A stretch of 64,000 nt of DNA from Macrostomum hystrix (lineage: Eukaryota; Animalia; Platyhelminthes): positions 10,726,001-10,790,000 of the forward strand of contig CATNEN010000007.1 of the NCBI GenBank assembly GCA_950097015.1. Reading direction: 5' to 3'. Position 1 is the first letter of the stretch. Each line of letters opens with the position of its first letter. Made by a program: the position numbers and the translations under genes. Below the pieces are notes generated by a model that saw nothing but the letters and a program-made list of their open reading frames with translations, was not told where the DNA came from and searched no databases. This document shows positions 12,165 through 25,500 of this stretch, in pieces.

Positions 12165-15100
12165 GCTACGCTCTTTCTAGGAATGCACTGTTCATGCTAT
12201 TCAGGCTACGCTCTTTCTAGGAATGCACTGTTCAGGCTATTCAGGCTACGCTCTTTCTAGGAATGCACTGTTCATGCTATTCAGGCTACGCTCTTTCTAG
12301 GAATGCACTGTTCAGGCTATTCAGGCTACGCTCTTTCTAGGAATGCACTGTTCAGGCTATTCAGACTACGCTCTTTCTAGGAATGCACTGTTCAGGCTAT
12401 TCAGGCTACGCTCTTTCTAGGAATGCACTGTTCAGGCTATTCAGGCTACGCTCTTTCTAGGAATGCACTGTTCATGCTATTCAGGCGACGCTCTTTCTGG
12501 GAATGCACTGTTCAGGCTATTCAGGCTACGCTCTTTCTAGGAATGCACTGTTCATGCTATTCAGGCTACGCTCTTTCTAGGAATGCACTGTTCAGGCTAT
12601 TCAGGCTACGCTCTTTCTAGGAATGCACTGTTCAGGCTATTCAGGCTACGCTCTTTCTAGGAATGCACTGTTCAGGCTATTCAGGCTACGCTCTTTCTAG
12701 GAATGCACTGTTCATGCTATTCAGGCTACGCTCTTTCTAGGAATGCACTGTTCAGGCTATTCAGGCTACGCTCTTTCTAGGAATGCACTGTTCAGGCTAT
12801 TCAGGCTACTGTTGTGCACGTGCGCTTGCACTGCTCAAGTGCACTCGCCCCCCTGCGCAACAAGTGCACTCGCAGTTGTTTTTGGCATTGTTGTTTTGGC
12901 GTTAAAGGCTCAGCGGTGTAAGCCGCTTAGCCGCCATTGTGTTGGCTGCGCGCTGGTTGGCTGGGCCGCCCTTTTTGGTCCTCGCCCCAGGCTGCCCCTC
13001 CCCCAGCTGCGCCGTGATTGGCCGGTGGGTAGCTGGGCCGGGGTGGTGGGTGGGGGTGGGGCGGGGGAGGGGGCCCCGGCCCTTCGTGAGCCGTGTCCTA
13101 TAAAGGCGCGGCCGGGGGCGGGTGGCTGCCCCGTGCGCGTGTTCACGCTCTACAACGCCTGACTCTGTTTCCATAACCCGTCCCCCACGCACAAATAATA
13201 ACTAATAAATATCGACCACCCGGTCTGCCAGCCGCAATCAGAAGTCCGCTGAACGAAGTTGACTACCCGCACGAGTGCGAGTGAACCAGAAGTAAGTCGC
13301 TGCCTTGTCTCCTTCATTTCGGGGGCTGTAGTGGGGACCGTCCGTGTGTCCTGACGCCGACTAAGGAGGGGGACTAGACCAGGTAGCCAGCCAGGGGTCA
13401 CCCTGTACTGTACGCCCGCTGTACTCAGACGCCAGCTCGTGCGCCCTGCCGCCCCGCTGAAGGGTGATCGACATCACAGCGTCCCGACGCGTGTGCCGGC
13501 CACTTGGGTGCGTCCTGACGCCCCAGACTTAGGGTCCCGTGCGGACACTCGCGCCCTGACGCAGGCCAGCACGGGCCCGCGTACTCTGACCCTCCTAGGG
13601 GCACCCCTCCGGGAAGTCGCGAGTACAACACTACGCTCTTTCTAGGAATGCACTGTTCAGGCTATTCAGGCTACGCTCTTTCTAGGAATGCACTGTTCAG
13701 GCTATTCAGGCTACGCTCTTTCTAGGAATGCACTGTTCATGCTATTCAGGCTACGCTCTTTCTAGGAATGCACTGTTCAGGCTATTCAGGCTACGCTCTT
13801 TCTAGGAATGCACTGTTCATGCTATTCAGGCGACGCTCTTTCTGGGAATGCACTGTTCAGGCTATTCAGGCTACGCTCTTTCTGGGAATGCACTGTTCAG
13901 GCTATTCAGACTACGCTCTTTCTAGGAATGCACTGTTCAGGCTATTCAGGCTACGCTCTTTCTAGGAATGCACTGTTCAGGCTATTCAGGCTACGCTCTT
14001 TCTAGGAATGCACTGTTCAGGCTATTCAGGCTACGCTCTTTCTAGGAATGCACTGTTCAGGCTATTCAGGCTACGCTCTTTCTAGGAATGCACTGTTCAG
14101 GCTATTCAGGCTACGCTCTTTCTAGGAATGCACTGTTCAGGCTATTCAGGCTACGCTCTTTCTAGGAATGCACTGTTCATGCTATTCAGGCTACGCTCTT
14201 TCTAGGAATGCACTGTTCAGGCTATTCAGGCTACGCTCTTTCTAGGAATGCACTGTTCATGCTATTCAGGCTACGCTCTTTCTAGGAATGCACTGTTCAG
14301 GCTATTCAGACTACGCTCTTTCTAGGAATGCACTGTTCAGGCTATTCAGGCTACGCTCTTTCTAGGAATGCACTGTTCATGCTATTCAGGCTACGCTCTT
14401 TCTAGGAATGCACTGTTCATGCTATTCAGGCTACGCTCTTTCTAGGAATGCACTGTTCATGCTATTCAGGCTACGCTCTTTCTAGGAATGCACTGTTCAG
14501 GCTATTCAGGCTACGCTCTTTCTAGGAATGCACTGTTCATGCTATTCAGGCTACGCTCTTTCTAGGAATGCACTGTTCAGGCTATTCAGGCTACGCTCTT
14601 TCTAGGAATGCACTGTTCATGCTATTCAGGCTACGCTCTTTCTAGGAATGCACTGTTCAGGCTATTCAGGCTACGCTCTTTCTAGGAATACACTGTTCAG
14701 GCTATTCAGGCTACGCTCTTTCTAGGAATGCACTGTTCATGCTATTCAGGCTACACTCTTTCTAGGAATGCACTGTTCATGCTATTCAGGCTTCGCTCTT
14801 TCTAGGAATGCACTGTTCAGGCTATTCAGGCTACGCTCTTTCTAGGAATGCACTGTTCATGCTATTCAGACTACGCTCTTTCTAGGAATGCACTGTTCAG
14901 GCTATTCAGGCTACGCTCTTTCTAGGAATGCACTGTTCAGGCTATTCAGGCTACGCTCTTTCTAGGAATGCACTGTTCATGCTATTCAGGCTACGCTCTT
15001 TCTAGGAATGCACTGTTCAGGCTATTCAGGCTACGCTCTTTCTAGGAATGCACTGTTCAGGCTATTCAGGCTACGCTCTTTCTAGGAATGCACTGTTCAG

Positions 15101-15595
15101 GCTATTCAGGCTACGCTCTTTCTAGGAATGCACTGTTCATGCTATTCAGGCTACACTCTTTCTAGGAATGCACTGTTCATGCTATTCAGGCTACGCTCTT
15201 TCTAGGAATGCACTGTTCATGCTATTCAGGCTACACTCTTTCTAGGAATGCACTGTTCATGCTATTCAGGCGACGCTCTTTCTAGGAATGCACTGTTCAG
15301 GCTATTCAGACTACGCTCTTTCTAGGAATGCACTGTTCAGGCTATTCAGGCTACGCTCTTTCTAGGAATGCACTGTTCAGGCTATTCAGGCTACGCTCTT
15401 TCTAGGAATGCACTGTTCAGGCTATTCAGGCTACGCTCTTTCTAGGAATGCACTGTTCAGGCTATTCAGGCTACGCTCTTTCTAGGAATGCACTGTTTAG
15501 TCTACGGCTCTTTCTAGGAATACACTGTTTAGTCTACGGCAGTTTATAGGAATGCACTGTTCAGTCTACGGCAGTTTCTAGGAATGCACTGTTCT
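12165..15595. repeat. 40-bp satellite (gctacgctctttctaggaatgcactgttcaggctattcag), interrupted by a solo LTR
   Basis: Tandem units at 12165-12809 and 13631-15595. Confidence 0.95.
12810..13630 (+). mobile_element. Solo LTR (821 bp), probably Gypsy-type
   Basis: TGTTGT...ACAACA termini and a 4-bp target duplication ctac (12806-12809 / 13631-13634). Contains a TATA box (tataaa ~13100) and AATAAA (~13204). No coding capacity. Confidence 0.85.
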
Positions 15596-15992
15596 GAAAA
15601 TTTAGGCTATCAAAAGTGCAATTCATTATTCTAGTCCGATCTGTGCAGTTGATGTCGATTAAATCGTTATGCCTTGAGTCCAAAAGCATCAAGTCAGCAA
15701 ACTAGATATAGATAATAGATATAGATAATATTGAAAATAAGTCACCATGGACACAAAATAGAATGTGTGGAGGTGCACAGCCACCAGCAAAAAATGTATT
15801 TATTTTAGCAGTAGCATAATACATTCTGAATCAACACATCAAGTAGAGTACCATCACGCTAACAATCAAACAATAACAATAGAATCTGAACGATACAACT
15901 CGTTCAATATGGTAAAATAGCGAAACTCCAATTCTGGGTTATTGTGAACTATCAGTGTCGCAGGGGAGTCGAAGACGCAACGAAGCTGGAGT

Positions 15993-18900
15993 CTACAGGG
16001 GACGTCCGACAGCCGCCGATGCCTGCCCGCAGGCCAGCTGCCGCACAGCCTCCAGTAGGTTGGTCTCGCTGGTCAGCAGTTCTCGGAGACGCTGCTGCTC
16101 ATCATCGGAGCGGCAGTACACAAGGCAGTGCCCGCCATCGACGCGCACGCGGCCCCGCGATTGGACCAGAGCGGCGACGCAGCTGGGCGGGTCGGCCAGC
16201 ACCAGAAGGTTGCAGCGCGGCAGGTCGAGTCCCTCGCAGGCGATGGGCGTTGCAGCCAAGATGTTGACCTCGCCGCGGCCCACCGACTCGAGTAGACGAC
16301 GCTGCTGAGGCACGGACATGCCGCCGCTCCCGCCGAGACCGTGGCCGAGGAGGCAGGCAGGGCGAAGGCCGCAGTCAGCGAATGCAGCGTGGGAGCCCAA
16401 CAGCTCGTGGAGGCGCTGAGCTGTAGCACGCTCGCGCACAATGACCAGCGTCAGGCCGCCATTGCTAACGGTGCCGCGAAGATCGTCGGCTAAGGCACGA
16501 AGTACGGAACCGCAGGCAGCTGAGGCCATTTGACACCCACGCAGTTGCTGCAGAGCCACAGCTAGCGTCCCAGCCGCCAGGCGCAGCTCGGCCAGCTGCT
16601 CCGATGACAGAATCAGCGGACACAGTCGGGCATCATCTAGAAAGTCGCCGAACTGCTGGTGGGAGCTGTCGCAGACGCTGAGGGCCAGGTCGCTGTGCAG
16701 CTGGAGAAATGGGAGCAGGTTGGGCGACTAAGATCTGCAGCAAAAGTCGAACTGGGATCTGGGAGAGTCGAACTGGAATCTGGCAGTCGAACTGGGATCT
16801 GGGAGTCGAACTGGGATCTGGGAGAGCCGAACTGGGATCTGGGAGAGTCGAACTGGGATCTGGGAGTCGAACTGGGATCTGGGAGAGCCGAACTGGGATC
16901 TGGGAGTCGAACTGGGATCTGGGAGAGTCGAACTGGGATCTGGGAGAGCCGAACTGGGATCTGGGAGAACCGAACTGGGATCTGGGAGTCGAACTGGGAT
17001 CTGGGAGAGCCGAACTGGGATCTGGGAGTCGAACTGGGATCTGGGAGAGCCGAATTGGGATCTGGGAGAGTCGAAAAGGGATCTGGGAGTCTAACTGGGA
17101 TCTGGGAGAGCCGAACTTGGATCTGGGAGTCGAACTGGGATCTGGGAGAGCCGGGACTCACCTCGCTGAGCTGGCGGAGGCAGTTAATCAGGAGGCCTAC
17201 TGGCTCGCAGACGGCGGTTCGAGCTGCCACCTCGTCTAGTACGCCAGCCAGACTCGGACAGTTAAGGCCACCGTTGGTTAGCAACTGATCAACAATAAGC
17301 ACAGCGTCAGGCGACCCAGCCGCATTGGCCGCAGTCTGCAGAGCGCGTAAAGCAGCGTCGGCGTAGTCGGTCAGGGCTTTCATGGCGGCCGCCTCTTCGG
17401 CTATCGGCGGCACCAGGCGACCAACCAGGCTGGCTCGGACAGAGAAGTCGGACAGCTCGGTCTGCGAGGCCGACGAGCTCGGCCAAGCCAGGCGGGCGCC
17501 ACCCAGCCTGTCCAGGAGGCCGAAGAGCATAGATTGTGTGGCCAGCAGGGTCGCCTGAATTGCATTGGTGCAGCTCTCAGGTTAGCAGCTTTCTGTTACT
17601 AATAATAGCAGCACTAGCAGCAGTGGTACCAGTGGTAGCAGCACTGGCAGCAGTGGTAGCAGCACTAGCAGCAGCACTAGCAGCAGTGGTAGCAGCACTG
17701 GCAGCAGTGGTAGCAGCACTAGCAGCAGCACTGGCAGCAGTGGTAGCAGCAGTGGTAGCAGCACTGGCTGCAGTGGTAAGCAGTGGTAGCAGCAGTGGTA
17801 GCAGCACTGGCAGCAGTGGTAGCAGCAGTGGTAGCAGCACTGGCAGCAGTGGTAGCAGCAGTGGTAGCAGCACTGTCTGCAGTGGTAAGCAGCACTGGCA
17901 GCAGTGGTAGCAGCAGTGGTAGCAGCACTGTCTGCAGTGGTAAGCAGCACTGGCAGCAGTGGTAGTAGGAGGGGTGGGGAGGTTCTAGCCGAGCTTTGAA
18001 CCCTTGACAGGTTTTGAACCGTAGTCGTACAGGAAACTATTTGTCTTTGAGCAAGTCACTTAATCAGCTGTAAAATGGGTACCAGCACAAGCTTAGGCTG
18101 TGTTTAGGACTGTGTGACTCCCACGCTTAGTCCATGGACTGAAAAGCTGTACATCTGGCACTACTAATTAGTGTTAGTTCGATCGATCAAGCAGTAGCGG
18201 CAGTTCTCAGCAATGGCGCACGAACCTGCCCAGCGGGCGATGCGGTGAAGCCGAGTAGCCGGGGCGCCTCAGTCGGCGGCATTCCGAGCACCTGCCGCGC
18301 CAGCAGGTGGTAGGGGTGCATGGCGCCGCAGTGGTGGGCCTCGTCCATGGCCAGCAGGCAGGTCTGGTCCAGGCGCAGAGACCCGGTGCGCAGGCAGTTG
18401 GCGTAGAACGCGGCCGTCGTCACCACCAGGTCAGCGGCGGCCAACGGCTGCTCGTCGGGCAGACTGAGCAAATCGCCGCAGACGGCGGCCACAGCCAGCG
18501 GCCGGATCTCCGTCGGGGTTGCCGCGGAGGTCGACGGCGGCGGCAGCGGACGAACGAATCGGCGCATGCGGACCTGGCGAACGGAATCAGCTTGAGGTAA
18601 GCCCAACTGCAATTCGACTAACTACTCAATTGAACTCACCTGGGCGAGCTGAGTACGCAAGAAGGCGGCCTGCTGCAGCACCAGCAGGACCTTGTCCACT
18701 AGGAACACCGCGCTGCGCAGCGGGTTTGCTTCCAGCGCAGCCAGCAGGGCTAGCGCCGCAACCAGCGTCTTGCCAGTGCCGGTTGGTAGGACACACAGCG
18801 CGTTGCCATGGAAACAGCACATCTGGTAGGCCTCCAGTTGGTAGGTACGCGGCCTCAATGTCGTCGGCCAGTCAAGACGGGCGGACGGCCAGGTGCCCGG

Positions 18901-21050
18901 AGCAGCAGCGGACACTGGCGGCGGCGCAGGACGGTCGGGCGCGGGGCAGCGGACGGCAAGACGGCGCCGGTGATCGCGACCGGCAACGTGGGCCGCAACG
19001 CTATTGCCATGGAGACGGATGCCGCACAGGTTACACAGGGAGTAGCCGTCAGCCAGCTGCGTCACGGGTTGATGGCTGGCTGCACTGGTGGTAGGGTGGT
19101 GGCGGCATCCCAGTGCAATCGTGTGGGTAGCAGAGATTGAAACGTGAAGGCAAGAATTGAAAAGTACTCACCGATAGCGAGATCCGGCTGGGGCCCATCG
19201 ATAGCTACGGAAGGCTGGGAAATACCGGCAGCGCGGAGACGCTTGAGATGGCTCTTACCCTGCTGGTGGTTCCGCATTTGGGGCCACGTATTGCACTGCA
19301 CGTTGCACACTTTGCACAGAAGCATGCCGCCTGGCTGGGCCTCAACCAGCTGCTGGCTTGAGGAGACGGCAGTGGGGGATGCGGCTGCGTTGGCGGCAGC
19401 TGGGGAGGCGGTTGCGTAGGCGGCAGAAAGAGAGGCGGTTGCCGGCGAGGCGGCAGTGGGCGAGGTAGAAGATAGGAGACCAGAGAAGCCGGACGGCGAG
19501 GGCGTCAAGCGACGAGCATCGATTCCCCAGCTAGCCAGGTTGATCGGCGAGTGTGATTTGGTTCCCAATTCTATGCTGGCTTCGTGTAATGCGAGCGTCG
19601 TTGAAGGCTGGAAACCGACGTTAGTCCTGGCTGATGAAGCGGCGGGGGTGGCGGGAGACGACGGTTGCAGCGAAGGTGCCATGGTGACCGGGAGCATGGA
19701 GGGTGAGCTGGCAGATGAGGAGGCCAGCTTTGATGCCGAGGCCGCCGCTATCGCTGCCGCCCGTCGGTGGGCCTGGCCATTCCAGTGGTCGGCCAGGTTG
19801 TTCATGCTGGTGGCGAAGATGCTGCACAGGTCGCACCTGAAACGGCCATCAGATTCCATGCGAAAAAATGGGCTGGACCGAATCTCACTGTGCAGCGGCG
19901 ACTGCCGGGATTGGTGAATCTGCTGGATCGGTTGCTGAAGTGGTTGTACGGGTTGTTGTAAACGTTCCTCGGGTTGCTGTACAGGTTGAACGGGTTGCTG
20001 GACAGGCTGCACGGGTTGATAAACAGGTTGCACGGATTGCCGGATGGGTTGCACGGGTTGCTGGACAGGTTGCATGGGCTGCTGGACAGGTTGCACGGGT
20101 TGCTGAAAAGGTTGCACGGGTTCCTGAGCAGGTTGCAATTGTCGTTGGACCGATGGTGGACATACGAGACGTGAAGGCCAGGCAGACAGGGCTGAAGATG
20201 CAGGCGGAGATATTCGCACTGACTGAAGCGATGTCTGCGGCGACTGGCTGACCTGAGCTCCTGACTGCAGAGTCATCTGCGCTAGCTGGTCAGAGAGGAA
20301 AGTCATCGCCTGCTGGCTGGTGGCAACAGCCGGTTGTCCCTGCTGTTGCAAGGGCCATGAGGCGAGCTCGCAGTGAGGCACCAGCGGCTGGGTGGAGGAC
20401 GCGGCCGACGGCTGCTGGCTGACTTCGGGCAGCCGGACCGACTGGTTCCTTTCCACGGCGTCGAAGTTCAACGCGCTGGCAGAACCGGCGACTCCGGAGC
20501 CTCCGTTGGCAGAGTTTGCTTGCGGCCCCCCGCCAATGCCAGCTATGCGAGCGGCATTGTTGTGCGCGCGGCCGCGCAGGTGGGAGGCCAGGTCATCCTT
20601 GGAGGTGGCGTGAATACGGCACAGGTCGCACCAGTACCAGACGACGCCGCCGCCGCGGTCTTCTTGCCGAACGTGCCCGGCCAGCAGGCAGTCGACGCCT
20701 TCGCGAGACTGTAGCTGCCGTCGGTGCGCCTGGCCCCTGCAGTGGGCGGCCAGGCTGGCCTCCGAGGTGCAGGCCACGTCGCAGATCAGGCAGCGGAAGG
20801 CCTGGCCCGCGGCCCCAGCCTGGACCCGGCTAGCGGCTTTCTGGTGCCGCTGGCCGCTGAGGTGGTCGGAGCGGTGACTGGCAGAAGTGAAAGTGACGCC
20901 GCACAAGCCGCAGTGGCTGCTGGTGACTTGTTGCTGCTCCTGGAAGAGGCGCAGAGGGGGACGGCTTTGCAGTAGCCTGTAGAAGGAAATCCAGATATGC
21001 GAGTCTGATCCCACACCTTAATGTGCGGGCAGAAATACCTTTGTAGGCAT
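15993..21050 (-). CDS. RIG-I/MDA5-like DExD/H RNA helicase with six N-terminal U1/matrin(JAZ)-type C2H2 fingers (~1220 aa); exons 21050-21039 (uncertain), 20939-19172, 19079-18640, 18573-18226, 17554-17162, 16700-15993
   Basis: Helicase motifs: Q PRTYQLE, I LPTGTGKT, Ia FLVDKVLLVLQQ, II DEAHH+HPY, III LGFTASP, V EGLDLPRCN, VI QSRGRVR. Fingers have C-x2-C-x11/12-H-x5-H spacing. Summed exon length is a multiple of 3. AATAAA on the minus strand at ~15800. Confidence 0.85.
16747..17152. repeat. 19/21-bp intronic minisatellite (gaactgggatctgggagagtc)
   Basis: Visible tandem units in a helicase intron. Confidence 0.9.
17605..17965. repeat. Low-complexity gcagcagtggta/gcactg repeat in a helicase intron
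   Basis: Visible tandem units. Confidence 0.9.
18035..18165 (+). mobile_element. Partial SINE copy (same family as 31905-32230)
   Basis: Shares the blocks gagcaagtcacttaa...cagctgtaaaatgggtaccagc...ccatggactga with the tRNA-headed copy. Confidence 0.55.
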
Positions 21051-21254
21051 AGCTGCCTAAGCTAGCTATCAGAAACACAGGCAAAACTGGCATGATAATG
21101 TCTCTGCGAGCGTATATCCCTATTACGAGTTAGTTAGCTAAATTTATCTTGAAGTTGTTTTCAAACCTTTCCTAAACGTTTCTATAATCTGCGACTTTTG
21201 CTTTGTTGTTGATTTTGATCATGTGGATTAAAAGGCTGAATTATCATCTATTAA

Positions 21255-21537
21255 CACTCGCCAGTGTACATTTCCCATAGAAAGCACACACTCGCCAGTG
21301 TACATTTCCCATAGAAAGCACACACTCGCCAGTGTACATTTCCCATAGAAAGCACACACTCGCCAGTGTACATTTCTCATAGAAAGCACACACTCGCCAG
21401 TGTACATTTCCCATAGAAAGCACACACTCGCCAGTGTACATTTCCCATAGAAAGCACACACTCGCCAGTGTACATTTCCCATAGAAAGCACACACTCGCC
21501 AGTGTACATTTCCCATAGAAAGCACACACTCGCCAGT
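21255..21537. repeat. 34-bp minisatellite
   Basis: cacactcgccagtgtacatttcccatagaaagca, about 8 copies. Confidence 0.92.
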
Positions 21538-22046
21538 CGATCAATATTTAGCTATCGCGCCTAAAAACTTTTTACAACGACCAACAAACTAATAACTTGC
21601 AGAAGAAAGTGAACTCAGCCGTTAATAAATAACCGATGGCGCGTCTAGCGCGCAGCGGGCCACACGCGTTCGTAGAATTTAATATAAATTAAGCCTTAAC
21701 AGACAGGTTTAAACAATAAAACAGCACTCCGCGCTGCCGGCGCGCGAACCGGTTAATTAAGTATAGAAAGAAACACTGCGAATGGACCATTGGCAGTGCA
21801 TTAGCACATCCTACGTACGCAAGAGGACAGTACAAAATAAACAATTTTTCAACAAGTGGTCAGCAAGTTTTATCACAAGCAAAAAAATAATATTGAATTT
21901 CAAAATTGAATGCTTTGCCAGCTGTAATAGCAGTTCAGAACTGACGCCAGTCAAGCTTCAGTACGTTTGATTAACAATATAATAAAAGTCCCATCGCAAA
22001 GCACCAACACGGATGAGCTCCTCGGAGAGGAGAAGGAAGAAGGAGA

Positions 22047-22520
22047 AGGATCCTCGGATGGGGAGATGGGAAGAAGGGATCCTCGGATGGGGATATGGGA
22101 AGAAGGGATCCTCGGATGGGGAGATGGGAAGAAAGGATCCTCAGATGGGATAGTGGGAAGAAGGGATCCTCGGATGGGGAGATGGGGAAGAAGGATCCTC
22201 GGATGGGGAGATGGGAAGAAGGGATCCTCGGATGGGGAGATGGGAAGAAAGGATCCTCAGATGGGATAGTGGGAAGAAGGGATCCTCGGATGGGGATATG
22301 GGAAGAAGGGATCCTCGGATGGGGAGATGGGAAGAAAGGATCCTCAGATGGGATAGTGGGAAGAAGGGATCCTCGGATGGGGAGATGGGAAGAAGGGATC
22401 CTCGGATGGGGAGATGGGAAGAAGGGATCCTCGGATGGGGAGATGGGAAGAAAGGATCCTCGGATGGGATAGTGGGAAGAAGGGATCCTCGGATGGGGAG
22501 ATGAGAAAAAGGGATCCGTG
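22047..22520. repeat. ~29-bp purine-rich minisatellite downstream of the GCP2 stop
   Basis: ggatcctcggatggggagatgggaagaag units. Confidence 0.9.
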
Positions 22521-22567
22521 GATGTAGAGATGGGAAGCGGTTGCTAAGCAGCTGCCAGGCGCGCAGC

Positions 22568-25500
22568 CTAGTTAGCGGCCACATAGAAGTAGTTGTAGTT
22601 GAGGCGGTAGATCAGGTTCATGAGGTTTAGCCGCTGATTGGCGCAGTGCTCGGCGATGGCGTCAATGAGCTGCTTGAGCAGGCCGCTGAAGTTGCCCGAG
22701 AAGGTCAGCACCGTGGCTGCCAGGTCGGCGGACTCCGCTGAGCCGCCGTGCCGGGCGATGCAGTTGCAGAAGGTGACGCAGACGGCCAGCATTTTGTAGA
22801 GCAGCTTGAGCAGGTCCGGCTGCTGCAGCATGCAGTCTGACAGGCAAGAGGTCAGCATGTGCGAGTGCCGCTCGATAAGCTCGTCCAGGTTGCCCACCCT
22901 GGCCAGGCAAATTGAGAGCGAAAATTAGATTGACGGAATTGACTGCACCGGCAATAGCTGCTCCTACGATACTGGCTATAGCTGCTCCTACGATACTGGC
23001 TATAGCTGCTCCTACGATACTGGCTATAGCTGCTCCTACGATACTGGCTATAGCTGCTCCTACGATACTGGCTATAGCTGCTCCTACGATACTGGCTATA
23101 GCTGCTCCTACGATACCGGCAATAGCTGCTCCTACGATACTGGCTATAGCTGCTCCTACGATACTGGCTATAGCTGCTCCTACGATACTGGCTATAGATG
23201 CTCCTACGATACCGGCAATAGCTGCTCCTACGATACTGGCTATAGCTGCTCCTACGATACTGGCTATAGCTGCTCCTACGATACTGGCTATAGCTGCTCC
23301 TACGATACTGGCTATAGCTGCTCCTACGATACTGGCTATAGCTGCTCCTACGATACTGGCTATAGCTGCTCCTACTAAAATGTAGGTGAGTTAATCATAA
23401 CCAAATCACAAAGCTGATTCAAGTTGCACATGGCTCATTACTCACTTATCCAGCTGAGTCCACAGGCGATGCCAGGCCGGCTCGATGACTTCGAAGGTCA
23501 TGTAGTACTCCAGGTGCTGCACAAAGGTGAGCATCTGTTGGCGCAGCGCGTAGGCCGCGGTGACGCCGGCCCTGCTGTGATGCTGCTGCAGCCACACTGA
23601 GCCAAGCAGGCGCTCCACGTGCCTGCAGTAGAACAGGTGCCGGAACAGCATCTGGTAGCGAGTGATGGCGCGCCGGTTGATCAGCAGGCTAAGCGGAAAG
23701 TCCACCTCGATGTCCAAGCTGAAGGCCTCCAGCGCTGTCAGGCGGGAAGAGGCGGCTGCGTCAGTTGAGGAGAGGCCGGCTGGCGGCGCCTCACGCAGGC
23801 TGACCAGGGCCAGCATCTGACCGATGAGGTCGTGGGGCAGCAGGGCCACCCGCAGCCGATCCCGGTTGGGGTCGGGGCCGGCGGCGCTGGTGCGCACGGC
23901 GGTCTCAAGCAGCGACTCCAGCCGGCTGAGGGAGACGCGGCCGGCCTCGCGGCGCATCTCCGAGTCGGCCAGGTCCATGAAGTGCACGAGAAAGTCGCTC
24001 TGGTCCAGCAGGAAGAAGCGCTTCAGTGAGCACAGAAGGTCGCGCAGGCCCTTGTCGCGGAGCAGCCGCATGAGCAGGGCAGCGGCCTTGGCGTGGGCGT
24101 TCTCAAGCTGCTCAACGTAGCGGCCACCCTCGTAGGCGTAAGCGAGCTCCTCGGCCGGATAATCAAGGAGTGCCTCGCCGCACTGGGCCACCACATTTAG
24201 GTACTTGCCAGTGCTCAGCACCTTCTCGGCCATCGGCCAGAGGAAGCTGGGCACTCGCTGGCTGCACAGCTGGTAGCGGTTCTCCCAGTAGTCGCTGAGG
24301 GGTGGTTCGATATTAACACTCGTACAGTGGAACTCTTTGACCATAGAACATCCTAGTCCGACTCACTTGATGTACTCTCTGGTGAGCACTTCCTTGGACG
24401 TGGCCGTGTTCTCCGTGACCATGAACTCAGCGTAGGGATCGAGCACGCGGCCTCGGTAGACCCAGGTCTGAAGCATGTCAAAGAAAGGCCGGCTGGCAGC
24501 CCGGGTCAGGTGCAGCAGCAGGCGGTGCCGCTTGGGGTCGCCGGCCGAGGCGCAGGCCTTGTCGTGCAGCAGGGACAACACCGAGCCGCCGAGGCACTCG
24601 CCCTGGTTCACATCGTAGGCGATTTCGGCCAGGGTCTCCAGCACGCGGGCCGGCTCCTGCAGGCAGCAGTGCAGCCGGTGCAGGCGCAGCTGCCCGATCC
24701 GCTGCTGATGCTCCAGCTGGCACACCAGCACGCCAAGGTCCCTGCGGGCATTGGGCACGGCAAGGGAGGCTTCAATGTACAAAAACTTAAAATCGAGGAC
24801 TTAAAGATTTCACACCTGGGATGTAAGTCTAGATCCCACACCTGGGCTGGAAGGCTAGATCCCACACCTGGGCTGGAAGGCTAGACGGCCTCACCTCAGC
24901 AGGCCGGTGATGGCGCCGCTCAGCGCCTGATTGACCATGCCGTACTCGTAGGCGGTCTTGTCCTCGGCGAAGCGGGTCACGTCGGAGCGGTGGCTGCAGA
25001 CCGGCAGCAGCTGGCCAAGCATCTCCAGCCGCGTGGCGTCCAGGCTGTTATCGACGTCGAAACCGCGACGGTCGGCCCGCGAAGCCTGCGGTCGCGGCAC
25101 AACAAACGAGCCCTGGATTCGGTTGAGTTTTCGGAGGATTCTGCAGGATCCTCTTGGAAAAAGCCTCACTTGCTAACATTTACAGCATCTTCCAGCACGC
25201 GGACTTACCTCAACGCCGCTGAGCAGGCTGAGCACATCTTGAATTATCAGCTGCTCCTGCGCCTCCACTGGGTAGACGCCGATTCCGGGCGTCAGGCGTC
25301 GCGGTGGATCGTCCAGGACGAAGTCGGCGGAAAGGAACGGCCGGTCGTAGAGCCAGTCGGGCTGCCAGGGCACCTCGGCTGGCTCGGCCGCCGGCGTCTT
25401 CTGGCGCAGCGCCGCGGAGACCGAAGCCAGCGGCAGCGTTGAAGAGTCCGGCGCCCTCTGGCGAGCTTCGGCGTTCATGTGCGACGACAGTGCGGCCACA

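Follow-up and report, generated by a model that had tools for sequence, protein, structure and literature searches.

Work on double-stranded RNA (dsRNA) sensing in animals rests on two helicase lineages, the RIG-I-like receptors (RLRs) on one side and the Dicers on the other. A locus in the flatworm Macrostomum hystrix, lying within a stretch of 64,000 nucleotides (nt) of contig CATNEN010000007.1 (positions 10,726,001 to 10,790,000 of the forward strand, hereafter the window), raises the question of what kind of protein a helicase of this type makes when it stands behind six zinc fingers and lacks the RLR C-terminal domain (CTD), and whether this combination is peculiar to the locus. We found that the locus is a protein-coding gene on the minus strand, with five exons over 20939-15993 and single-copy in the genome, and that it is, judging by its sequence, the flatworm orthologue of an ancient and widely conserved animal family. 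We hold this structural and evolutionary description with high confidence. The whole explanation that we favor, which joins the gene structure and the family membership to a dsRNA-tethered ATPase acting as a cofactor, we consider probable.

The coding exons (20939-19172, 19079-18640, 18573-18226, 17554-17162 and 16700-15996) total 3654 nt, or 1218 codons, and specify a protein of about 1219 residues. In window coordinates, the parts of the gene are as follows:

20940..20941, minus strand: putative trans-splice acceptor AG, strong, with a pyrimidine tract before it
19172..20939, minus strand: exon 1, 1768 nt; zf-met fingers 1-5, with long low-complexity Q/P/A/S linkers between fingers
19080..19171, minus strand: intron 1, 92 nt, GT..AG; absent from contigs of runs X2, X3 and X4
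18640..19079, minus strand: exon 2; finger 6, a conserved linker, the Q-like motif RTYQLE, and motifs I (LPTGTGKT) and Ia (FLVDKVLLVLQQ) of Hel1
18574..18639, minus strand: intron 2, 66 nt, GT..AG; spliced in one X2 contig, short side 32 nt
18226..18573, minus strand: exon 3; Hel1 motifs II (DEAHHC) and III (FTASPAG)
17555..18225, minus strand: intron 3, 671 nt, GT..AG; spliced out in X2 record 5
17162..17554, minus strand: exon 4; end of Hel1 and a helical insertion (Hel2i-like)
16701..17161, minus strand: intron 4, 461 nt, GT..AG; spliced out in X2, X3 and X4 contigs
15993..16700, minus strand: exon 5; rest of Hel2i, Hel2 (LLGHG..GMSVPQQ, ATPIACEGLDLP, QSRGR), one C-terminal helix and the stop
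15995-15993, minus strand: stop codon TAG; contigs pass unbroken into the 3′ untranslated region (UTR) (records 4, 10 and 16)
15799..15992, minus strand: 3′ UTR, with AATAAA at 15804-15799, 189 nt past the stop; contigs extend to 15815-15852

Transcript evidence for this structure came from Logan contigs of runs X2-X4 (one study), which we compared with positions 15700-21300. The contigs form a chain from exon 1 to exon 2 (X3 record 14), from exon 2 to exon 3 (X2 record 7) and through exons 3, 4 and 5 (X2 record 5), and they cover exon 1 over 19172-20568. The skipped stretches carry CT..AC ends when read on the plus strand, equivalent to GT..AG on the gene's own strand, and the exon frames agree. 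The contigs lack introns although the gene is single-copy, and on this ground we take the runs to be RNA; the gene is expressed. The contigs span the junctions and pass the stop, and therefore the fingers and the helicase share a transcript and no CTD exon lies downstream. A preliminary description of this DNA had proposed a spliced open reading frame that starts from 21050, joins fingers to helicase through a single junction at 19172/19079, and stops at 15993 with AATAAA about 190 nt later. The single spliced transcript, the stop and the AATAAA all hold up, and the junction was placed correctly: it keeps the frame, and contigs of three runs contain it with 92 nt skipped (125 nt on one side of the join and 442 nt on the other in X3 record 14). 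The model itself needed revision, since there are four introns rather than one, and the coding sequence starts at 20939, without an ATG of its own.

At four 3′ UTR positions (15881, 15888, 15919 and 15921) runs X2 and X3 do not match the assembly; 16546 and 16615 are also variant positions, and at 16546 all four runs depart from the assembly. The transcript data therefore represent a strain or haplotype other than that of the reference. Two of the introns contain minisatellites, which are CAG-like at 17615-17965 in intron 3 and built of 40/61-nt units at 16745-17153 in intron 4, where they fill the intron.

The N-terminal part of the protein holds six fingers, each of the form C-x2-C-x12-H-x5-H in the exon translations, where every finger string quoted in the preliminary description can be read:

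20912-20844, minus strand: finger 1, CGLC..HLSGQRH
20792-20724, minus strand: finger 2, CLIC..HCRGQAH
20630-20562, minus strand: finger 3, CDLC..HLRGRAH
19835-19767, minus strand: finger 4, CDLC..HWNGQAH
19316-19248, minus strand: finger 5, CKVC..HQQGKSH
19035-18970, minus strand: finger 6, CNLC..HVAGRDH, in exon 2

In Pfam, exon 1 scored 98.5 bits for zf-met (1.6e-28, five stretches; cut-off 21.2) and 57.6 bits for zf-C2H2_jaz (1.2e-15; cut-off 22.6), and the fingers of the window exons and of the orthologues also match SF3a60/Prp9 and zf-U1 weakly. The assignment of finger type rests on Pfam because a phmmer search of the whole finger exon against the PDB gave no match. The linker between fingers 3 and 4 includes a 21-nt coding repeat (20137-19930, minus strand) that makes about ten QPVQPVQ heptads; the Macrostomum lignano orthologue has a comparable repeat, with a weak 'Decapeptide' Pfam match.

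Behind the fingers, Pfam placed ResIII/DEAD in exons 2 and 3 and Helicase_C in exon 5 (1.6e-11), and the architecture check thus reads zf-met and zf-C2H2_jaz, then ResIII/DEAD and Helicase_C. Helicase motifs I, Ia, II, III, the IV-type GHG..GM..QQ, V and VI are all present, including every string from which the preliminary description had recognized the helicase (FLVDKVLLV, DEAHH, LGFTASP, LLGHG..GMS..QQ, EGLDLPRCN and QSRGR). Chance would come nowhere near producing such a set of fingers, motifs and Pfam matches. The first Cys of finger 6 sits 74 residues before PTGTGKT, and 50 residues follow QSRGR (motif VI) to the protein end, which in the family lies some 45-55 residues past this motif. 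Searched exon by exon with Pfam, no exon matched CARD, RD/CTD, PAZ or RNase III. Dicer_dimer/DUF283, PAZ and RNase III were found neither in the exons nor in the orthologues scanned, and the same holds for CARD, Death, DED, TIR and other adaptor domains. In genome-wide searches, which covered 220 Mb in 42 contigs, PF11648 (RIG-I_C-RD) matched only two loci, the nearest 2.2 Mb from the gene. The earlier claim that RD/CTD, CARD, PAZ and RNase III are missing is borne out by these searches and by the contigs that pass the stop.

We then asked which solved proteins this core resembles. In phmmer searches of the exons against the PDB, the best solved sequence relatives were RIG-I (1.1e-12, with exon 5 as the query), an ancestral Dicer helicase (1.8e-12), MDA5, LGP2 and DRH-1, with Hef and FANCM appearing as weak matches (FANCM only at 1e-3 with exon 5); for exon 3 the best solved relatives were the ancestral Dicer helicase, the plant proteins DCL3/DCL1 and RIG-I. 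For the fold, an AlphaFold2 model was made of an 819-residue member of the family from Glandiceps (P0026), with a 24-sequence family alignment. Its predicted local distance difference test (pLDDT) score is 78.9 for the whole model and exceeds 90 over residues 245-816. The model predicts Hel1, an all-helical insertion (~518-641), Hel2 and a single C-terminal helix of 30 residues; the helicase-proximal finger and its linker are modeled with confidence, and the distal fingers are placed on disordered linkers. A Foldseek search with this model returned RIG-I (E 2.7e-28), MDA5, LGP2, DRH-1 and the ancestral Dicer helicase over ~540-560 columns. The exon sequences and the predicted fold both indicate an RLR/Dicer-type core in which a helical insertion (Hel2i) separates Hel1 from Hel2, and the insertion of the orthologue is colinear with window exons 4-5.

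Is this combination of fingers and helicase peculiar to the locus? The closest protein among 1.8 billion representatives is PAA57349.1 (P0001) from M. lignano, with 68% identity over exon 5. P0001 also has six fingers and is colinear with all five exons at 47-84% identity: 47% for exon 1 (residues 2-463), 82% for exon 2 (residues 680-817), 84% for exon 3 and 63% for exon 4 (residues 937-1067). The exon 5 search returned 115 representatives below 1e-10, and the best full-length relatives carry several zf-met/JAZ fingers, then ResIII/DEAD, with Helicase_C at the extreme C-terminus. The hosts include bivalves, gastropods and cephalopods, the hemichordates Ptychodera and Glandiceps, the crinoids Antedon and Anneissia, the sponges Oscarella, Sycon and Corticium, the brachiopod Lingula, the nemertean Lineus and the stony coral Oculina. 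Altogether, the finger-helicase build recurs, with the same end point, in more than 30 database proteins of seven phyla; PAA57349.1 (M. lignano), V4BFR5 (Lottia) and LOC106154762 (Lingula) are examples. No vertebrate, insect or nematode member was among the matches listed, which does not by itself show absence from those groups. The fusion had been put forward as a candidate new architecture at this locus, and this claim falls, as the same build is found from sponges to hemichordates in public databases.

Comparison of the family members indicates the constant parts of the protein. In the family a finger precedes motif I by 76-82 residues (74 in the window gene), and the tails extend 0-16 residues past the helicase core in nearly all members, those of Dreissena polymorpha and two unnamed contig proteins being longer. 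The ATPase residues are invariant in 24 family members, the Macrostomum protein included, and the finger count ranges from 1 to 13; compact members, such as those of Glandiceps and Oscarella, have 819 and 788 residues. The constant core of the family is one finger, a fixed finger-to-core linker of ~45 residues and the helicase, and the N-terminal part varies. In six members (P0179, P0193, P0195-P0197 and P0201) a Z-alpha domain lies upstream of the helicase-proximal finger, an order that was checked in P0179 and P0196; these variants point to nucleic-acid sensing.

To place the family we built two trees, both with a 'quick' search: the first of 65 helicase cores, and the second of 52 cores, with named RLRs and Dicers included and archaeal Hef and FANCM as the root. 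In the rooted tree the SH-like approximate likelihood ratio test (SH-aLRT) gave supports of 99 for the zinc-finger family, 98 for RLRs, 99 for Dicers, 99 for fusions of a helicase with an RNA-dependent RNA polymerase (RdRP), 99 for dsRBD-helicases and 100 for Hef/FANCM. Window exon 5 pairs with M. lignano P0001 at support 100 within the family clade, and the family groups with Dicer, RdRP-linked and dsRBD (dsrm) helicases at support 91; a clade of the family with RLRs was not rejected by the approximately unbiased (AU) test (p = 0.42). Among the dsrm-helicase clade members are P0046, P0069, P0079, P0081, P0092, P0095 and P0204, and the Heterostelium member adds a protein kinase domain. Within the family, sponges group with cnidarians and hemichordates with lophotrochozoans, and this grouping fits vertical descent from the animal ancestor; the Z-alpha member P0179 pairs with the protein of the coral Oculina. 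On the strength of these helicase alignments, the family branches separately within the RLR/Dicer superfamily; it is not a derived RIG-I/MDA5, and it is not related to FANCM in particular. The preliminary description had called the helicase RIG-I/MDA5-like, and this was right in that it belongs to the RLR/Dicer group of ATPases activated by duplex RNA, but it sits in its own clade (99) outside the RLR clade (98); the exclusion of FANCM agrees with the split from Hef/FANCM at support 100.

The start of the protein required separate consideration. The finger frame is open from 21017, with an upstream stop at 21020-21018, and no in-frame ATG was found between that stop and finger 1. Directly after the putative acceptor at 20941-20940 the frame continues with GAG CAG CAA, and an ATG carried by a spliced leader would join GAGCAGCAA at 20939 and give (M)EQQQVTSSHC. 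As genome query we used the 3′ end of the Macrostomum spliced leader, and the sequence ...TTGCATG followed by GT was found in many genome copies, arrayed with a period of either ~11.6 kb or ~927 bp; because the arrayed copies read ...TTGCATG|GT, the leader ends in ATG. The M. lignano orthologue was deposited as 'partial', without a Met, and begins seven residues before the first Cys, the same point as here, and the first Cys is residue 7-11 in most full-length family members examined. We infer that the start Met is most likely supplied by the spliced leader. Three other candidates were considered and rejected. An ATG at 21093 with a GT donor near 21038 is out of frame with the fingers at either nearby acceptor; a leader joined to the 20978/20977 acceptor would be out of frame and soon meet a stop, so that 20941/20940 is preferred; and the loose end of a contig at 20952, which might have marked an upstream exon, is sequence on contig C25 that shares ~22 nt with the window, a chance match without bearing on the 5′ end. 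The leader arrays with a period of about 11.6 kb lie on C15, C17 and C42, and the one with a period of about 927 bp, which is filled by the leader variant GAAGACTCTCTTTTTTGCATGGT, lies at C39:12667898-12693869. Scattered leader copies with GC, AA or CA in place of GT resemble retro-copies of trans-spliced mRNAs.

What might such a protein do? Fingers of the zf-met/JAZ type bind A-form duplexes without sequence preference, as in ZNF346, ZFR and ZMAT3. ZNF385A likewise binds dsRNA via this finger type (PMC11985509). We hypothesize that the finger array would hold the protein on long A-form duplex RNA through many weak contacts, reading neither sequence nor ends, and that fingers on flexible linkers would confer a length-dependent avidity for long dsRNA. 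The motor, having no CTD, would lack an end-reading cap and could engage duplex stems; since every ATPase motif is kept, we propose that the core would hydrolyze ATP on the duplex and translocate along it or remodel it, and the fixed proximal finger may help it to close around the duplex. The protein might then prepare dsRNA for, or hand it to, Dicer- or RdRP-type small-RNA machinery, or modulate that machinery. The same genome has possible partners, namely two Dicers, CTDs of canonical RLRs and genes that fuse a helicase with an RdRP. The fingers may stand in for the CTD, which would make the protein a dsRNA sensor or a cofactor of RNA interference (RNAi), and a cofactor role is the likeliest because the protein has no output (effector) domain. 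That it acts as an RNAi or antiviral cofactor and not as a signaling receptor follows from the known behavior of its parts, and we regard this functional reading as evenly poised.

Several observations weigh against parts of this account. The run records do not name RNA, and the RNA origin of the contigs is deduced from their being spliced; the exons were searched one at a time, with database orthologues standing in for the full-length protein, whose start is putative, as no read covers the 5′ end. In Macrostomum, motif V departs somewhat from the family form (ATPIACEG against ATSVAEEG), the Macrostomum branch is long, and the tree and the AU test together do not separate a sister relation to RLRs from one on the Dicer side. 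Fingers of the zf-met/U1-like kind are found in proteins of the spliceosome and the nucleolus as well, which keeps a housekeeping RNA role as a candidate. Such a protein would be a nuclear or nucleolar helicase that remodels pre-rRNA, snRNA or hairpin precursors, unrelated to defense or RNAi. The weak SF3a60/Prp9 and zf-U1 matches of the fingers speak for it, as does a gene that is single-copy and apparently vertical since the animal ancestor, with no lineage expansions, a pattern typical of housekeeping genes and not of immune genes, which evolve fast. Yet vertebrates, insects and nematodes are all missing from the matches listed, as one would not usually expect of an essential housekeeping factor; the characterized relatives (RLRs, Dicers, DRHs and RdRP-linked helicases) all act on dsRNA in silencing or immunity, and the Z-alpha variants point away from housekeeping, which we accordingly rate as unlikely. 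An antiviral signaling receptor in the RIG-I/MDA5 sense, in which dsRNA binding by fingers and helicase triggers an immune cascade, strikes us as distinctly unlikely. The helicase is closest in sequence and fold to RIG-I, MDA5 and LGP2 among solved structures, Z-alpha is known from immune sensors and occurs in some family members, and NCBI names some members 'RIG-I-like' or 'DHX58-like', but the exons and orthologues scanned hold no CARD, Death, DED, TIR or other adaptor domain, the RLR clade does not include the family, and the genome already encodes canonical RLRs that have a CTD.

Both of these readings accept the gene as drawn. If the gene were instead an artefact of annotation, it would be two neighboring genes, one for the zinc fingers and one for the helicase, or a canonical RLR or Dicer with missed 3′ exons. 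The original gene model was made without transcript data, and contigs of runs X2-X4 cover 20562-20935 only thinly; against this, each exon junction is spanned by contigs, others continue past the stop codon, more than 30 proteins from seven phyla share the build and the end point, and no RD domain lies within 2 Mb. These findings refute an artefact, which we hold to be very improbable. Nor is there much room for a DNA-branch translocase of the FANCM/Hef type. The matches to Hef and FANCM and the JGI label of one family member, 'ERCC4-related helicase', are what would suggest it, and against them stand an E-value of 1e-3 for FANCM as opposed to 1e-12 for RIG-I, an insertion domain that is all-helical, as in RLRs and Dicers, and a split at support 100 from all RLR/Dicer-type helicases, the family included; the phylogeny refutes this possibility, and we give it hardly any credence. 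A dsRNA-tethered ATPase acting as a cofactor is the explanation that we retain.

Elsewhere in the genome, RdRP (PF05183) matches adjoin RLR/Dicer-type Hel2 matches in long open frames at C32:34568-38150 and C7:2556477-2563888, which we read as helicase-RdRP fusion genes in an animal genome. The genome also has the two loci of canonical RLR CTDs (PF11648) and two Dicer_dimer loci, the latter on other contigs. The product of the next gene upstream in the window, on the same strand (23445-24344, minus), is a gamma-tubulin complex component, with matches to GCP_C_terminal (7e-48) and GCP_N_terminal (3e-15). Minisatellite arrays flank the finger-helicase gene at 15000-15593, 21254-21537, 22044-22537 and 22950-23375, and some minisatellites yield long spurious open reading frames on both strands.

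A family spanning sponges, coral, lophotrochozoans, echinoderms and hemichordates, and forming a distinct clade with the same motor and a different RNA-binding module, suggests that the animal ancestor had a richer toolkit for dsRNA than model organisms show. A motor without a CTD is also a natural test of the share of the CTD in RLR behavior. In M. lignano, RNAi by soaking, in situ hybridization and transgenesis are in use, and the single-copy orthologue in that species makes the function directly testable. More tentatively, and short of what we would call probable, the family could be an ancient superfamily branch present in the animal ancestor and lost in vertebrates, insects and nematodes, whose members would be end-independent dsRNA sensors or translocases (Z-RNA sensors where Z-alpha is present) that feed RdRP/Dicer silencing. 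If true, this would be a separate arm of ancestral animal defense against viruses and transposons, overlooked by CTD-based surveys of RLRs. Animal RdRPs are patchily distributed (PMC6396948), and the link between them and the finger-helicase family, which consists in sequence proximity to helicase-RdRP fusions and in both being patchy, is a lead only.

How the family has been overlooked can be seen from the literature. Surveys of invertebrate RLRs pick genes by the RD domain, and the N-termini that they report are CARD, Death, DED, IG, SAM and CASc, with no zinc fingers (PMC8998645, PMC9334734, PMC11103948); because selection is by the C-terminal RD domain, these surveys miss the finger-helicase family. 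No description of the family was found in the open-access full-text literature, so an earlier description elsewhere is possible. The preliminary description had held the fusion to be undescribed, which is consistent with the lack of an open-access paper, but the proteins themselves are already in databases under automatic names: 'uncharacterized', 'RNA helicase', 'RIG-I-like', 'DHX58-like', 'dicer-like 1', 'dicer 2-1' and, from JGI, the label noted above.

Compared with the RLRs (RIG-I, MDA5 and LGP2, and DRH-1/DRH-3 of Caenorhabditis elegans), the window protein shares the same superfamily 2 (SF2) helicase type, with Hel1, helical insertion, Hel2 and pincer helix, and the motifs PTGxGKT, DExHH, TASP, GHG..GM..QQ and QxRGR. 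Like LGP2 and DRH-3 it has no CARDs; among RLRs, N-terminal tandem CARDs are limited to RIG-I and MDA5. It differs in lacking the RD/CTD, the RLR-defining module that reads RNA ends, and in having only one pincer helix and N-terminal zf-met fingers. The cofactor role proposed for it would resemble those of DRH-1/DRH-3 in nematodes and LGP2 in vertebrates. The Dicers of animals, plants and fungi have the same helicase type, and the first split of the rooted tree puts the family with them (support 91), a placement that lacks significance in the AU test (p = 0.42 for the alternative); in contrast to Dicer, the window protein has no Dicer_dimer, PAZ, RNase III or dsRBD and ends right after Hel2.

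The fingers, for their part, are the same C-x2-C-x12-H-x5-H fingers on long, non-TGEKP linkers as those of ZNF346/JAZ, ZFR, ZMAT3/Wig-1 and ZNF385A. These proteins have no enzymatic domain, whereas the window array is fused to an ATPase, with its last finger at a fixed distance from motif I. Finally, the nearest helicase relatives outside the family are the helicase-RdRP fusions, some with a terminal uridylyltransferase (TUTase), and the dsRBD-helicases of protists, fungi and some animals; with P0026 as the query, these two groups matched at E ~1e-58 and 1e-55, Dicers at 1e-37 and RLRs at 1e-33. They likewise join a dsRNA-type helicase to another RNA-handling or RNA-binding module, but their partners are RdRP, dsrm and kinase instead of fingers, and each forms its own clade at support 99.

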